The position numbers and the translations under genes are program-made. Under the pieces are notes generated by a model that was given only the letters and a program-made list of their open reading frames with translations, was not told where the DNA came from and did not search any database. This document shows positions 10,168-18,740 of a stretch of 25,338 nucleotides of DNA, piece by piece (positions within the stretch are counted from its first letter, which is position 1; every line of letters begins with the position of its first letter). Location: the NCBI GenBank assembly GCA_002269645.1, contig NIVC01004062.1, positions 1-25,338 on the forward strand, written 5' to 3'. This DNA is from Macrostomum lignano (lineage: Eukaryota).

Positions 10168-10518
10168 CTACTGCTCCGGAGATCCGGCAGCTTCGCCGGC
10201 ACTCTCCATCTGCATCGCCTGGCGCAGCTCCTCGCGAGTCTCTTCGTAGTCGACAGCCAGCCGCTTGTACAGCAGGATGCACAGCAGGCACATGGAGTTC
10301 AGCTGGTACCAGCAGGGCCTGCAGTAGGCGCCGTTGCATTCCAGACAGATTTTGAACTGCTCAAAGCCCCGATCGCCACAGCAGAGACACTGTACGTTGC
10401 CGTTCATAAATGGCAGGCTGCCAAATATGGAATTCCAAGTGGGCGAGCGGAGCCGGAGCTTGGTCACTATGCCGAACGGATCAATGTTGAACTTCTCCGC
10501 CAGGATTCGCTGCAGCAC
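10168..10518 (-). CDS. Exon 8 (terminal): C4C4 RING-like finger at 10279-10389
   Basis: Acceptor CTTCCCACGCAG|; CLCC..CLEC..CRPC..CLLC; TAG at 10170-10168. Confidence 0.88.
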   Translation of the reverse strand: MLQRILAEKFNIDPFGIVTKLRLRSPTWNSIFGSLPFMNGNVQCLCCGDRGFEQFKICLECNGAYCRPCWYQLNSMCLLCILLYKRLAVDYEETREELRQAMQMESAGEAAGSPEQ

Positions 10519-16500: not shown

Positions 16501-18740
16501 GTGAGAATTGGGTTTTGATGCGGTGCAGCCCTCACACTGGCACCCAGTCTCTTGCCTGGGTGTCTCTTGTAAGTGCCCACTGTCTGCCCCGCAGCACCCA
16601 CTGTCTGCCCTGCAGTGCCCACTGTCTGCCCTGCAGCACCCACTGTCTGCCCTGCAGCACCCACTGTCTGCCCTGCAGCACCCACTGTCTGCCCTGCAGC
16701 ACCAACAGTCTCCAGCTTCAGTCTGGGGACTCTGGCAGCTGGCTATCAACAGCCAACCCACCTGGTGGGCACGGAGACCAGCGGCACGGTGGTGTCAATC
16801 TGCCGGTCGGTCACCGCGGAGCCGCCAGTCAGGCCGCTCGCTGAGGCGACGTCGCCAGCCAGCCGGATGGCCTTGGGGTCGAGGCCGGCCAAGCCGTCCT
16901 GAGCTGTGTAGGCTCGCTGCAGGTAGAAGGCGGCCACAATGCTGAGTATGGCTATCATGCTTAGCGGCAGGAGCTCGTCTTGATTAGCCAGGTATCTGGA
17001 TGCAATCGACGGAGCGCAGGAGTTTTTGTTCGGCCGATGCGTGCTGGGATCGTAGCAGCTGAGCGGCGGGTGGCTGCGGAACCTCGGCGGCAGCTGGCCG
17101 GGCCGCTCGGCCAGGAACTCGGCGTAGATGGCCAGTTCGGCCGAGAACTCCATCCAGTCGTCGGCGGAGCGCACGCCGCAGCACTTCTCGTTGAAGTGCA
17201 CCTTGTCCATGAAGCTGGGATAGAATGGCTTGTGAGAAGATCCCGAGTGTTTGGCCTTGTTATCGTAGAATATCTTCAAGTTTAGCTGGGTGGTATTGAC
17301 CAGCCCGGCAGACTGCAGCTCCAGCAGCTTCAGCTTGGCCAGCTGGGCTATGAATGGCGCCGGCAGCAGCATCTGCGCGGGCGTCGCGGGGATAAAGGGA
17401 AAATAATGGGGAAATTTGCAATTTTACCGGCCTTGCTGCCCATTGCCTGATGCCTCACCTGCAGGATGTGGAACTGCCCATGCCCATTGCCTGATGCCTC
17501 ACCTGCAGGATGTGGAACTGCCCATTGCCTGTGGCCTCACCTGCAGGATGTGGAACTGCCCATGCCCATTGCCTGATGCCTCACCTGCTGGGTGTGGAAC
17601 TGCCCATGCCCATTGCCTGATGCCTCACCTGCAGGATGTGGAACTGCCCATGCCTATTGCCTGATACCTCACCTGCAGGATGTGGAACTGCCCATGCCTA
17701 TTGCCTGATACCTCACCTGCTGGATGTGGAACTGCCCATTGCCTGATGCCTCACCTGCAGGATGTGGAACTGCCCATTGCCTGATGCCTCACCTGCAGGA
17801 TGTGGAACTGCCCATTGCCTGATGCCTCACCTGCAGGATGTGGAACTGCCCATTGCCTGATGCCTCACCTGCAGGATGTGGAACTGCCCATGCCCATTGC
17901 CTGATGCCTCACCTGCTGGATGTGGAAATGCCTATGCCCATTTCCTGATGCCTCACCTGCAGGATGTGGAACTGCCCATTGCCTGATGCCTCACCTGCAG
18001 GATGTGGAACTGCCCATTGCCTGATGCCTCACCTGCAGGATGTGGAACTGCCCATTGCCTGATGCCTCACCTGCAGGATGTGGAACTGCCCATTGCCTGA
18101 TGCCTCACCTGCAGGATGTGGAACTGCCCATTGCCTGATGCCTCACCTGCAGGATGTGGAACAGGCTGACAAGCAGGCTGACAAAGTTGGTAAACTTGGC
18201 CAGTTTGGACATCCGAAGCATCCGCAGTCGCGGCACCTTCCCCGTGACAGCGTAGGCCGTCAGCAGCGTCAGCAGCAGCGTCAGAGCCAGCTGGCAGCTG
18301 AACATCACCCGGCCAGTCCTGAAGCTGAACACGTAGCCCTGCCAATCATTCAGCATGCTGTCCAGCTGGGCGGTCTCCTTCGGCGTGTACGCCCACGGGT
18401 GCATTCTGGCTCGCTTAGCAGCAGACGGCATGTTCAGATAGACAGCCAGGGCAATCAGGAGACCCAGCTTCATCAGCAGCAAAGTTAGGCCAACCAGAAA
18501 GAAATTGTGCCTGCTCACCAGGCCCATTGTGTAGAGGGGAAACGGGCCAAATACATAGGAGGGAATTTTGTACAGAAAGCTCATGTTGGCGTCCAGCAGG
18601 TTGCCGATAAATCCGCTCGGCCTCACAATGGTGGCGCTCTGGTCAGCGCGCCGCTGCCGCTGCTCCTCCCAGTTTTTTAGTCGGTCGGCTAGCGCTTCCT
18701 CGGATTGCAGGTTCATGCTTTGGTTTGTTGCCTTTGTCAA
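10168..18740 (-). CDS. Predicted ~1250-aa multi-pass membrane protein: N-terminal tetraspanin-like module + DC-STAMP/DCST1-2/Sneaky/SPE-42-like region + C4C4 RING-like tail. Exons 18740-18147, 17372-16762, 16482-15279, [14589-14572], 14517-14377, 14107(or 14086)-13940, 12784-12302, 11473-11258, 10518-10168
   Basis: All joins are GT-AG and phase-compatible (0,2,0,0,0,0,0). DCST motifs: LLFIPSL...GPFQTLMHNLN...SMQC; Cys-rich ectodomain; FCNHYVT..LIDID.RR...LLPF; LNVTVQG; YMSRLR.FLCALFYPE..RR..ALYNQLL; CxxC-CxxC-CxxC-CxxC tail. The DCST identity is firm; the join to exons 1-2 is less certain. Confidence 0.82.
10738..11120. repeat. Two-unit minisatellite: 18-bp TATATTATGGCGCCCCTG and 23-bp TATATTATGGCGCTCCTCTCGTG
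   Basis: Visible interspersed units in the last DCST intron. Confidence 0.92.
11258..11473 (-). CDS. Exon 7: last TM and basic juxtamembrane segment
   Basis: Acceptor C11-TCACAAG|; YMSRLRPFLCALFYPEQQRRRTVALYNQLL; donor CAG|GTGCGT. Confidence 0.85.
11545..12290. repeat. 24-bp minisatellite GAAGCTTAGTAAT(G/T)TCACATTCTC, interrupted by a SINE at ~11989-12252
   Basis: Clear units at 11690-11988, degenerate copies from 11545, resuming at 12253-12290. Confidence 0.92.
11989..12252 (+). mobile_element. 5'-truncated tRNA-derived SINE with a CORE (MIR-core)-like central domain
   Basis: Pol III B box GGTTCGATTC at 12000-12009; TGTGTCCTTGAGCAAGACACTTAAC...CAGTT...CTGTAAAATGGG at 12030-12090 resembles the recalled MIR core; 3' hairpin 12209-12228; (ATT)n tail. 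Confidence 0.75.
12302..12784 (-). CDS. Exon 6: DC_STAMP domain core
   Basis: Acceptor CCCCTCCGCAG|; DLSFCNHYVTQQLIDIDYRR...LLPF...NVTVQG...EDCK; donor AAG|GTGAGC. Confidence 0.9.
12834..13815. repeat. 14-bp minisatellite GAGATCTTCC(CAAT/TGTT/CGCT), ~70 units
   Basis: Directly visible; accounts for the GRSQQEDL/GRSHWEDL ORFs. Confidence 0.96.
13940..14107 (-). CDS. Exon 5 (TM segments; start at 14107 or 14086)
   Basis: Frame of ORF 13889..14074; two in-frame acceptors (TTAG| 14108, CCGCAG| 14087); donor TCT|GTAAGA. Confidence 0.78.
14107..14372. repeat. (CTAA)n / (TTAG)n microsatellite filling the intron between DCST exons 4 and 5
   Basis: About 66 near-perfect units. Confidence 0.98.
14377..14517 (-). 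CDS. Exon 4 (47 codons, ESSPLPGSDSEF...NISIDD); not in the ORF track
   Basis: Acceptor CTGAC..CCCGCCCGCAG|, donor GAC|GTAAGT; 141 nt, open, phase 0/0. Confidence 0.8.
14630..15240. repeat. 23-bp minisatellite AACAGCACCCA(C/A)TATTCACTC(A/C)A
   Basis: About 26 units in DCST intron 3. Confidence 0.95.
15279..16482 (-). CDS. Exon 3: DCST-type N-terminal TMs and Cys-rich ectodomain
   Basis: Acceptor CTTGGCAG| at 16483 (phase 2); part of ORF 15258..16685; donor AGG|GTAGGC. Confidence 0.88.
16575..16705. repeat. 21-bp minisatellite CCCACTGTCTGCCCTGCAGCA, ~6 units
   Basis: Lies inside the 279-nt intron 16761-16483. Confidence 0.9.
16762..17372 (-). CDS. Exon 2: tetraspanin-like large extracellular loop, TM4 and linker
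   Basis: Acceptor CGCAG| at 17373; MDKVHFNEKCCGVRSADDW...PPLSCY...NSCAPSI then LLPLSMIAILSIVAAFYL; donor CCAG|GTGGGT, phase 2. Confidence 0.8.
17436..18161. repeat. 38/44-bp minisatellite whose unit contains the exon 1 end and 5' splice site, ~18 units
   Basis: Minus-strand unit CAATGGGCAGTTCCACATCCTGCAG|GTGAGGCATCAGG. Confidence 0.95.
18147..18740 (-). CDS. Exon 1: cytoplasmic N-terminus and tetraspanin-like TM1-TM3
   Basis: ORF 18105..18740; hydrophobic segments NFFLVGLTLLLMKLGLLIALAVYL, VMFSCQLALTLLLTLLLTAYAVT, FTNFVSLLVSLFHILQ; donor CAG|GTGAGG at 18147/18146. Confidence 0.75.

Follow-up and report, generated by a model that had tools for sequence, protein, structure and literature searches.

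A Macrostomum lignano gene predicted to fuse a tetraspanin with a DCST1-type protein, an architecture shared with other flatworms

Through analysis of contig NIVC01004062.1 of Macrostomum lignano, a single gene has been identified that would encode a tetraspanin and a DCST1-type protein in one polypeptide. Eight GT-AG exons on the minus strand, 18716-10168 of the window (the whole 25,338-nt stretch of DNA analysed), give a protein of 1240 aa, in which a tetraspanin module of four helices (residues 1-393) is followed by a DCST1/Sneaky-type protein (residues 395-1240). The mRNA of this gene, BOX15_Mlig000509g5, would join the eight exons to specify a multi-pass membrane protein, a cytoplasmic linker of ~100 aa tying the tetraspanin to a complete DCST1/Sneaky/SPE-49-type protein. 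The explanation as a whole, namely one gene for a 1240-aa tetraspanin-DCST1 fusion of single origin with an inferred role at the sperm membrane, is given a probability of about 0.88. The presence of both proteins in one polypeptide is supported, the junction splice resting on the published annotation pipeline and on orthology.

The fused model is GenBank PAA48771.1, with 100% the same sequence and the same start codon. All introns are GT-AG, and the reading frame is open throughout the spliced translation (Table 1). The original prediction began exon 1 at 18740 and expected ~1250 aa in total; its exon end at 18147 (donor CTGCAG/gtgagg) holds and the frame is indeed open from a TTG at 18740, but the first ATG is at 18716 and the spliced product has 1240 aa. 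The proposed phase 2 donor at 16762 and acceptor at 16483 do join in frame, according to splice sites and translation: exon 2 (611 nt) leaves two nucleotides (AG) before the donor CACCAG/gtgggt, past the acceptor cttggcag, whose last base is 16483, G16482 supplies the third base of an AGG (Arg) codon, and an in-frame ATG comes next at 16481. Read-through of the donor meets a TGA at 16748-16746, as had been foreseen.

Table 1. Features of the fused gene in window coordinates
Feature	Position	Strand	Evidence
Exon 1 (aa 1-190): cytoplasmic N-terminus and TM1-TM3	18147..18716	-	translation, splice sites, GenBank CDS start
Exon 1 start codon ATG	18716-18714	-	same start as GenBank CDS
Intron 1: minisatellite, 18 copies; unit = exon-1 end + 5' splice donor	17373..18146	-	
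Exon 2 (aa 191-393 + 2 nt): TM3 end, EC2, TM4, cytoplasmic tail of ~52 aa	16762..17372	-	
Junction intron, 279 nt, GT-AG, phase 2	16483..16761	-	sequence, splice sites
21-bp minisatellite inside junction intron	16576-16711		
In-frame stops inside junction intron	16748-16743	-	
Exon 3 (aa 394-795): junction Arg, Met395, DCST cytoplasmic N-terminus	15279..16482	-	spliced translation
Exon 3, further content: first DCST TM-helix cluster, long helical Cys-rich region	15279..16482	-	
Exon 4 (aa 796-842)	14377..14517	-	spliced translation, GenBank CDS
Exon 5 (aa 843-891): two hydrophobic helices	13940..14086	-	
Exon 6 (aa 892-1052): DC_STAMP domain, first part; Pfam match starts 12625	12302..12784	-	
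Exon 7 (aa 1053-1124): last TM helix and DC_STAMP domain end (to 11309)	11258..11473	-	
Exon 8 (aa 1125-1240): eight-Cys RING-like finger and acidic tail	10168..10518	-	
RING-like finger, aa 1168-1204	10389-10279	-	eight Cys
Stop codon TAG	10170-10168	-	
AATAAA, 169 nt past stop; no other canonical poly(A) signal follows the unit	9994..9999	-	

The assignment of the N-terminal third of the fused protein to a divergent tetraspanin, with four TM helices and an EC2 loop carrying CCG, PxSC and a final cysteine, is supported by its sequence features. Hydropathy peaks at aa 74-92, 137-161, 175-199 and 323-341 agree with the helices, loop and fourth helix originally read from exons 1 and 2, and all four helices are also present in the AF2 secondary structure. 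The EC2 loop of ~123 aa between the last two segments contains four cysteines, and the translation includes the motifs reported for it: EKCCGVRSADDW, PPLSCY and NSCAPS, with the CCG codons at 17183-17175. The signature residues are C254-C255-G256, P293-L-S-C296 and C309. In an alignment of 7 to 9 fused orthologues, which spans macrostomid, trematode and cestode proteins and the sequence of a 3681-nt contig, the CCG, W263, S295-C296 and C309 columns are invariant. The Pfam Tetraspanin family (PF00335) matches the isolated N-terminal product at 33.3 bits (E 5e-8; gathering score 32.1), but the full-length protein at 28.5 bits, under the cut-off, a marginal result for the HMMER check proposed earlier; orthologues score 32.8-53 bits. 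Searched against the PDB, a profile of the N-terminal family retrieves tetraspanins only, matching them from TM3 to TM4, the closest solved relatives being peripherin-2 (1.3e-14) and ROM1 (2e-10), then CD63, TSPAN10 and CD82. Structure prediction, also proposed for this part, yielded little confidence: the AF2 model of the module from a 9-sequence alignment reached pLDDT 55 and pTM 0.29, and Foldseek of this low-confidence model against the PDB gave no match and one meaningless return. The tetraspanin part of a full-length model (aa 41-1240, 71 sequences) has pLDDT 28-69.

The module might instead be a relic four-helix anchor that is no longer a tetraspanin, the protein acting like any other DCST1 apart from its long N-terminus. 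The module is very divergent; phmmer with this half gives no significant match, and hence no tetraspanin, in the PDB, identity being too low for pairwise detection, and the Pfam match on the Macrostomum module spans TM3-EC2-TM4 only. By hydropathy EC1 is longer than usual for tetraspanins (~44 aa), and EC2 has four cysteines against at least six in trematode orthologues. Against a relic stand the CCG, W, SC and last cysteine, unchanged from macrostomid to trematode and cestode, the family-profile match to tetraspanins at the level of 1e-14, and the pattern of substitution between Macrostomum paralogues, which together make it quite unlikely. For that comparison paralogue g1 was used and not copy g4 (L005), since g4 is 99.85% identical, introns included, which leaves a selection test without power. 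Between g1 and g5, 39 of the 46 nucleotide differences affect the third codon position; synonymous and non-synonymous codon differences number 39 and 7 across both halves, and 14 and 1 in the tetraspanin core. The fusion appears to be kept under purifying selection. The same junction is retained in the other Macrostomum copies; in g1 its intron has 708 nt, with donor and acceptor conserved, and intron 1 only 124 nt. The 847-aa “partial” model P0152 was considered as a natural unfused copy and rejected, its contig beginning inside tetraspanin exon 2.

The second part is the full DCST-type protein with a C4C4 finger that had been anticipated. DC_STAMP (PF07782) matches aa 945-1107 at 74.5 bits (E 1.3e-20), far above the gathering score of 25, and the terminal eight cysteines lie within aa 1168-1204 in the pattern CxCC..CxxC..CxxC..CxxC. 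Six of them (C1168, C1171, C1182, C1190, C1193 and C1204) are invariant among fused orthologues. No finger family, zf-RING_DCST1_C included, was among the Pfam matches of the DCST part, and the finger resembles only RING and FYVE fingers in the PDB, weakly (E ~0.4); phmmer with the DCST half gave no significant PDB match. In the full-length AF2 model, confidence is confined to the DCST core, pLDDT exceeding 90 over the exon 3 TM cluster. Hydropathy indicates seven hydrophobic segments in this part, although a cytoplasmic RING after a cytoplasmic linker requires an even number. The best matches outside flatworms are named DCST1 or sneaky-like, and NCBI names the flatworm fused orthologues DCST1; by these names the part is probably orthologous to DCST1/Sneaky/SPE-49 and not to the DCST2/SPE-42 branch. 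Judged by the Pfam scores of both halves and the invariant EC2 columns, the tetraspanin and DCST assignments exceed chance.

The M. lignano annotation was derived from RNA-seq assemblies, with units cut where spliced-leader or poly(A) reads mapped (PMC5730564), and the deposited transcript-based CDS keeps both halves as one gene. In Schistosoma haematobium and Taenia solium, one open genomic frame (473 and 463 codons, respectively) covers EC2 and TM4 together with the linker and the first helices of the DCST part, so no splice need be assumed there; the 3681-nt contig holds one unbroken 1129-aa ORF carrying both domains. Twelve poly(A) hexamer variants were sought between 16746 and 16483, and none was found. 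The predicted single tetraspanin-DCST polypeptide is thus borne out by the GenBank CDS, the other Macrostomum copies, the trematode and cestode orthologues and the lack of an internal poly(A) signal.

The same region could alternatively be read as an operon, in which a 398-aa tetraspanin ending at the TGA at 16746 precedes an 846-aa DCST1 trans-spliced at 16483 and starting at ATG 16481, the fused CDS being a chimera. In M. lignano ~30% of genes are trans-spliced and ~15% lie in operons, whose spacing, once adjusted for repeats, has its mode near 100 bp (PMC8629364); the stop-to-acceptor gap here, minus the repeat, is ~126 nt. As in the spliced-leader operons of this species, two complete coding units stand in tandem on one strand, separated by a short repeat-filled gap, with an ATG directly after the acceptor and a single terminal poly(A) signal. 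The DCST part is also complete by itself, ~55 aa preceding its first TM helix, and the chance of a frame match is 1 in 3. Unlike in those operons, the gap has a strong GT donor of matching phase and is spliced out in the deposited transcript model, and the orthologues have no gap at all, their junction falling within a single exon. The annotation left one gene here despite being cut wherever spliced-leader or poly(A) sites mapped, and no poly(A) signal separates the halves. The acceptor TGGCAG departs from YTNCAG, the motif enriched at trans-splice sites (PMC8629364), and the leader ends in ATG, whose splicing at this site would create a 7-codon ORF that overlaps the DCST start out of frame. 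As neither unfused product was found in a collection of 15 billion proteins either, an operon is highly improbable.

A fused mRNA might nonetheless coexist with unfused products, the tetraspanin alone arising by intron retention (stop at 16746) and DCST1 alone by trans-splicing or an internal start. An in-frame stop lies five codons into the junction intron, Met395 stands at the start of exon 3, trans-splicing is common in M. lignano (PMC8629364), and some Schistosoma models of 793-935 aa are without the N-terminal part, though these may be annotation variants. Such additional isoforms are unlikely: no such products were found in the 15-billion-protein collection, and they cannot be a conserved mechanism because the Schistosoma and Taenia junction has no intron. 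If they exist, the worm could tune the ratio of fused to unfused products.

Returning to the single fused protein, its orthologues were recovered by exhaustive homology search; word-indexed searches with each half gave no matches, and a profile search returned only paralogue P0001 and one starfish protein. Both domains are present in proteins of Paragonimus, Trichobilharzia, Calicophoron, Taenia and Schistosoma, and both Pfam families are matched in the Macrostomum protein and in flatworm orthologues. DCST1 of annelid, nemertean, brachiopod, echinoderms, amphioxus and vertebrates is unfused and 600-950 aa long, compared with 1240 aa in Macrostomum. All fused proteins form one clade in 100/100 bootstraps. 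From the fused flatworm orthologues, the unfused DCST1 elsewhere and this single clade, it follows by sequence comparison that the fusion is conserved flatworm-wide; it would have arisen once, before the split of macrostomids and parasitic flatworms. The fusion had been predicted to be lineage-specific, which is right for flatworms and wrong for Macrostomum lignano alone, since the proposed search of other species found the same architecture, and the same join, in flukes and tapeworms. Long DCST proteins of sea urchin, insect, copepod and frog were also considered as fusions and rejected; their N-terminal extensions contain no tetraspanin module by phmmer, or by Pfam for the sea urchin only. 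Origin by merging of neighbouring genes was rejected on the one species checked, Owenia, whose DCST1 has DCST2, not a tetraspanin, upstream; the two Owenia genes lie head-to-head, unlike the Macrostomum fused gene. Prior cataloguing had been named as a point against the prediction. GenBank and UniProt already contain the architecture in predicted proteins that bear automatic names, and this removes its novelty as an entry, but not as biology: no paper describing a tetraspanin-DCST fusion was found in the literature.

Compared with DCST1, Sneaky and SPE-49 (PF07782), the Macrostomum protein has the same DC_STAMP domain, clustered TM helices and C-terminal eight-Cys finger, but adds a complete N-terminal tetraspanin and the linker. 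With tetraspanins (PF00335) it shares four TM helices and an EC2 with CCG, DW, PxSC and a cysteine before TM4. These are free-standing proteins of 220-350 aa, whereas the C-terminus of the Macrostomum module continues into DCST1; the module differs further in its long N-terminus (~73 aa), long EC1 and only four EC2 cysteines. CD9 and CD81 were absent among the PDB matches of the family profile, with no sign of orthology. The likeness to them lies in tetraspanin chemistry and a fertilisation context; they act in trans from the egg, whereas the flatworm tetraspanin is in cis on the DCST1 chain. Egg tetraspanins are predicted to contact a sperm complex that includes DCST1/2 (bioRxiv 10.64898/2026.05.13.724128).

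In the proposed mechanism, the DCST module would comprise a TM cluster, a large helical region rich in cysteine and predicted to lie outside the cell, the DC_STAMP domain and, in the cytoplasm, a C4C4 RING-like finger. Sneaky and SPE-49 are orthologues of DCST1, a protein essential in sperm, and the mouse, fly and nematode orthologues have a known role in fertilisation (PMC8055269). By orthology only, a gamete role is inferred for the flatworm protein, which would work at the sperm membrane when sperm and egg adhere or fuse, like its mouse, fish, fly and nematode orthologues; literature and expression searches for Mlig000509 found no expression or functional data. The built-in tetraspanin may serve in cis to cluster or position the DCST1 module within a membrane domain of the tetraspanin type, with DCST2 as a possible partner.

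Of the known sperm fertilisation factors, only DCST1/2 are common to vertebrates, flies and nematodes; on the egg side, the classic factors are tetraspanins. A fusion of the two selected across a phylum suggests that DCST1 works via tetraspanin-type membrane organisation and predicts a cis partner of DCST1 in other animals. By the Rosetta stone principle, proteins fused in one lineage often cooperate as separate proteins elsewhere. It is conceivable, if rather doubtful, that the fusion hard-wires an existing interaction and that DCST1 (with DCST2) normally works in cis with a sperm-side tetraspanin. A tetraspanin would then have gone unrecognised as part of the conserved fertilisation machinery of sperm, and kinship to peripherin-2 and ROM1, which are membrane-curvature tetraspanins, would indicate which partner to seek. 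Transgenesis and RNAi exist for Macrostomum lignano, so the idea is directly testable there. Schistosomes and tapeworms, parasites with disease-causing eggs, would have in the orthologue a form of a fertility protein that is specific to flatworms.

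Re-translation of the minus strand yields a gene of eight exons (18716 to 10168) with GT-AG borders throughout, and splicing gives a 3723-nt open frame of 1240 residues. The exon and junction coordinates of the original prediction (donor, acceptor, frame and the TGA at 16748-16746 reached when the exon 2 donor is left unspliced) were accurate; the sole correction concerns the start, since the open frame begins with TTG at 18740, as read there, but its first ATG is at 18716. The junction acceptor cttggcag ends at 16483, an arginine codon is completed by G16482, and the ATG at 16481 follows in frame.

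Exons of the fused tetraspanin-DCST gene BOX15_Mlig000509g5
Exon	Positions	Strand	Remark
1	18716-18147	minus	
2	17372-16762	minus	611 nt, 3' end CACCAG/gtgggt
3	16482-15279	minus	
4	14517-14377	minus	
5	14086-13940	minus	
6	12784-12302	minus	
7	11473-11258	minus	
8	10518-10168	minus	

The fused model served as query in an exhaustive HMMER search, which returned a 1240-aa BOX15_Mlig000509 protein (99% identity); GenBank entry PAA48771.1 (UniRef A0A267DHN3; NIVC01004062.1, assembly GCA_002269645.1; CDS 18716-10168) is identical in sequence, so the fused model is the deposited annotation. That annotation was built from StringTie/TACO RNA-seq assemblies and a de novo transcriptome, the TBONE pipeline splitting transcription units at mapped spliced-leader or poly(A) reads (PMC5730564). 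Given the published method, a genuinely spliced mRNA would be expected to appear as a single uncut gene that lacks the junction intron. The same junction is kept in three further Macrostomum copies. A fourth copy, labelled 'partial' and starting with the junction arginine, is not a natural unfused copy, being truncated only because its contig begins within tetraspanin exon 2.

The DCST nature predicted for the C-terminal 846 residues is borne out by a DC_STAMP match (PF07782; 74.5 bits, E 1.3e-20) and by an eight-cysteine finger at the C-terminal end (residues 1168-1204); hydropathy gives seven hydrophobic segments for this part, whereas a cytoplasmic finger needs an even number. The N-terminal module has four hydrophobic helices (74-92, 137-161, 175-199 and 323-341), and the second extracellular loop (EC2, about 123 residues) contains the tetraspanin signature foreseen for it: C254-C255-G256, D262-W263, P293-L-S-C296 and the last cysteine, C309. 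The proposed match to Pfam Tetraspanin (PF00335) holds for the isolated N-terminal product, at 33.3 bits against a threshold of 32.1 and across TM3-EC2-TM4, but not for the full-length protein (28.5 bits). A pairwise PDB search with the tetraspanin half gave no matches; a profile of the fused proteins' N-terminal modules matched tetraspanins only, namely peripherin-2 (E 1.3e-14), ROM1 (2e-10) and CD63 (1.5e-7), followed by TSPAN10, CD82, TSPAN7 and TSPAN15. Judged by sequence, tetraspanin identity is marginal for the M. lignano module by itself and firm across the orthologue family. Confidence in the full-length AF2 model is confined to the DCST core, and the model is therefore silent on contacts between the modules. 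The C-terminus of tetraspanins and the N-terminus of DCST proteins are both cytoplasmic, which makes the join, through a cytoplasmic linker of about 100 residues, topologically plausible.

Nearly all of the 225 matches of the HMMER search were to the DCST part alone, and a few long proteins carry N-terminal extensions of 300-400 residues.

Fused tetraspanin-DCST proteins among the matches
Protein	Source	Length (aa)	Pfam Tetraspanin	DC_STAMP
P0021	Paragonimus westermani	1306	53 bits	yes
P0112	Trichobilharzia regenti	1327	43.5 bits	yes
P0169	Taenia solium	1176	36.5 bits	yes
P0049	Calicophoron daubneyi	1080	32.8 bits	yes
P0067	Schistosoma haematobium	about 1198	no match at E 0.01	yes
P0005	run ERR14224704	1129	42.2 bits	yes

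The N-terminus of the S. haematobium protein is homologous to that of Paragonimus (E 2e-32) and contains CCG, and several other Schistosoma species also have a tetraspanin-DCST protein. P0005 is a single unbroken ORF on a 3681-nt contig. In an alignment of seven fused proteins the tetraspanin columns CCG, W, SC and last Cys are invariant, and cysteines are conserved along the DCST part. The genomic evidence is decisive. At the S. haematobium locus (L003, 14191-15609) a single open frame of 473 codons covers EC2 and its CCG, TM4, the linker and DCST helices one to three; in T. solium (L007, 2094-3482) a 463-codon frame likewise runs from EC2 with CCG through these helices. With the junction inside a single genomic frame, the fused frame exists without assuming splicing. 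The identical deposited CDS, the fused orthologues and this open junction uphold the claim of both families in one polypeptide, and the suggested search of related species located the architecture in trematodes and T. solium.

The deposited T. solium model treats 87 nt (MIEF01007207.1; L007, 2343-2429) as an intron. Translated in frame, they read VTFYVPIFRKGCIEAVGDRLHPEFYGFLK, whose GC motif appears by eye, unaligned, to be the counterpart of the last EC2 cysteine conserved among the other orthologues, so the model probably misses a genuine EC2 piece.

In M. lignano about 30% of genes receive by trans-splicing a leader of 35 nt whose last three bases are ATG, and about 15% lie in operons, where the repeat-adjusted spacing is close to 100 bp (PMC8629364). 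An exclusive two-gene operon, with tetraspanin and DCST1 as separate products, would agree with the ATG directly after the junction acceptor and the gap of about 126 nt after repeat removal. However, this acceptor misfits YTNCAG, and the leader's ATG, read from the sequence, would not be in frame at this site and would start an overlapping ORF of 7 codons. None of 12 poly(A) hexamer variants occurs in the gap, while AATAAA is present at 9999, beyond the DCST stop, and another follows the upstream gene; the deposited annotation was left uncut. The strongest point is the orthologue junction without an intron. The separate tetraspanin and trans-spliced DCST1 that the original prediction had set against itself are thus disfavoured, and the operon is highly improbable. 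Neither an unfused tetraspanin nor an unfused DCST1 product of the locus was found in the protein collection, and unfused isoforms made alongside the fused protein are considered unlikely.

Comparison of the fused gene with its paralogue g1 (L006) revealed 46 differences over 3723 coding positions. Of these, 39 are at third codon positions, and the codons affected are 39 synonymous and 7 non-synonymous. Synonymous and non-synonymous codons number 14 and 1 in the tetraspanin core, and 23 and 4 in the DCST part; the tail of 53 codons ahead of the junction, with two differences only, is uninformative on selection. The analysis shows a single gene whose reading frame is conserved and whose two modules, both recognisable, are under purifying selection. 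All seven introns (10519-18146) carry different tandem repeats (periods 4, 14, 21, 23, 24, 38 and 41 bp), whose copy number sets intron lengths two- to six-fold apart between g5 and g1, with exons about 99% identical; the junction intron measures 279 nt here and 708 nt in g1 through minisatellite copy number, with donor and acceptor both kept. Intron 1 (17373-18146, minus strand) is an 18-copy minisatellite with a unit of 38 to 44 bp in which the final 10 nt of exon 1 are repeated together with the 5' splice donor (CATCCTGCAG/GTGAGGCATCAGG), so that 18 potential donors stand in tandem; in g1 this intron has 124 nt.

Outside flatworms, named DCST1/Sneaky-like proteins have 600-950 residues, and no tetraspanin module was found in those of Owenia, Tubulanus, Lingula, Acanthaster, Anneissia, Centruroides, Branchiostoma, Styela, Petromyzon, Pleurodeles or Teleopsis. 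In a neighbour-joining tree (669 well-occupied columns) the fused proteins form one clade in 100/100 bootstraps, long-branch effects being possible; P0005 lies inside it, neither stably with nor apart from the named flatworms. The DCST part of P0005 is about equally similar to Owenia DCST1 and to the trematode proteins. A merger of old neighbour genes is unsupported in the one species checked, Owenia, where DCST1 adjoins a DCST2-like gene and not a tetraspanin. The Owenia fusiformis locus (CAIIXF020000007.1; L004, 1-19919) holds a head-to-head pair of DCST genes, encoding 838 and 862 aa and separated by about 260 bp, both matching Dcst2, DC_STAMP and zf-RING_DCST1_C; the pair matches the DCST1/DCST2 pairing of the human genome, and such an arrangement is absent from the Macrostomum window. 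The simplest history is a single fusion predating the split of macrostomids from neodermatans (flukes, tapeworms); the named flatworms sampled were a macrostomid, flukes and a tapeworm.

A methylenetetrahydrofolate reductase gene (about 3131-7950, plus strand; Pfam MTHFR and MTHFR_C) is convergent with the fused gene, and a TATAAA lies at about 2876. DCST and MTHFR are arranged in the same way on contig NIVC01003944.1, in keeping with the duplicated M. lignano genome. A small ORF of 116 codons (19875-20225, minus strand) encodes a hydrophobic C-terminal tail, with an acceptor-like cccgcag upstream and AATAAA downstream (near 19478). No Pfam family matches this ORF, which is absent from the called genes reported for the contig. 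Short interstitial runs of TTAGGG-type telomere repeat (CTAACC, AACCCT units) lie at 8191-8224 and 23156-23186.

The fused proteins already have GenBank and UniProt entries, named automatically as 'hypothetical protein', 'DC_STAMP domain-containing protein' or 'E3 ubiquitin-protein ligase DCST1', so the sequence itself is not new and the notion of an uncatalogued architecture falls. A literature search of incomplete coverage returned no paper on a tetraspanin-DCST fusion or on DCST1 in flatworms. The DCST1 orthologues mouse DCST1, Sneaky and SPE-49 are sperm proteins needed in fertilisation (PMC8055269); DCST1/2 are reported as conserved parts of a larger sperm complex, predicted in vertebrates to contact the egg tetraspanins CD9/CD81 (bioRxiv 10.64898/2026.05.13.724128). 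By analogy, our best guess is that the fused protein would sit in the sperm membrane, where the tetraspanin module may cluster or position the DCST1 module in cis. On sequence grounds, the protein is best read as a DCST1-type protein that carries its own tetraspanin module across the flatworms, and the fusion may point to a DCST-tetraspanin partnership of interest to fertilisation biology.
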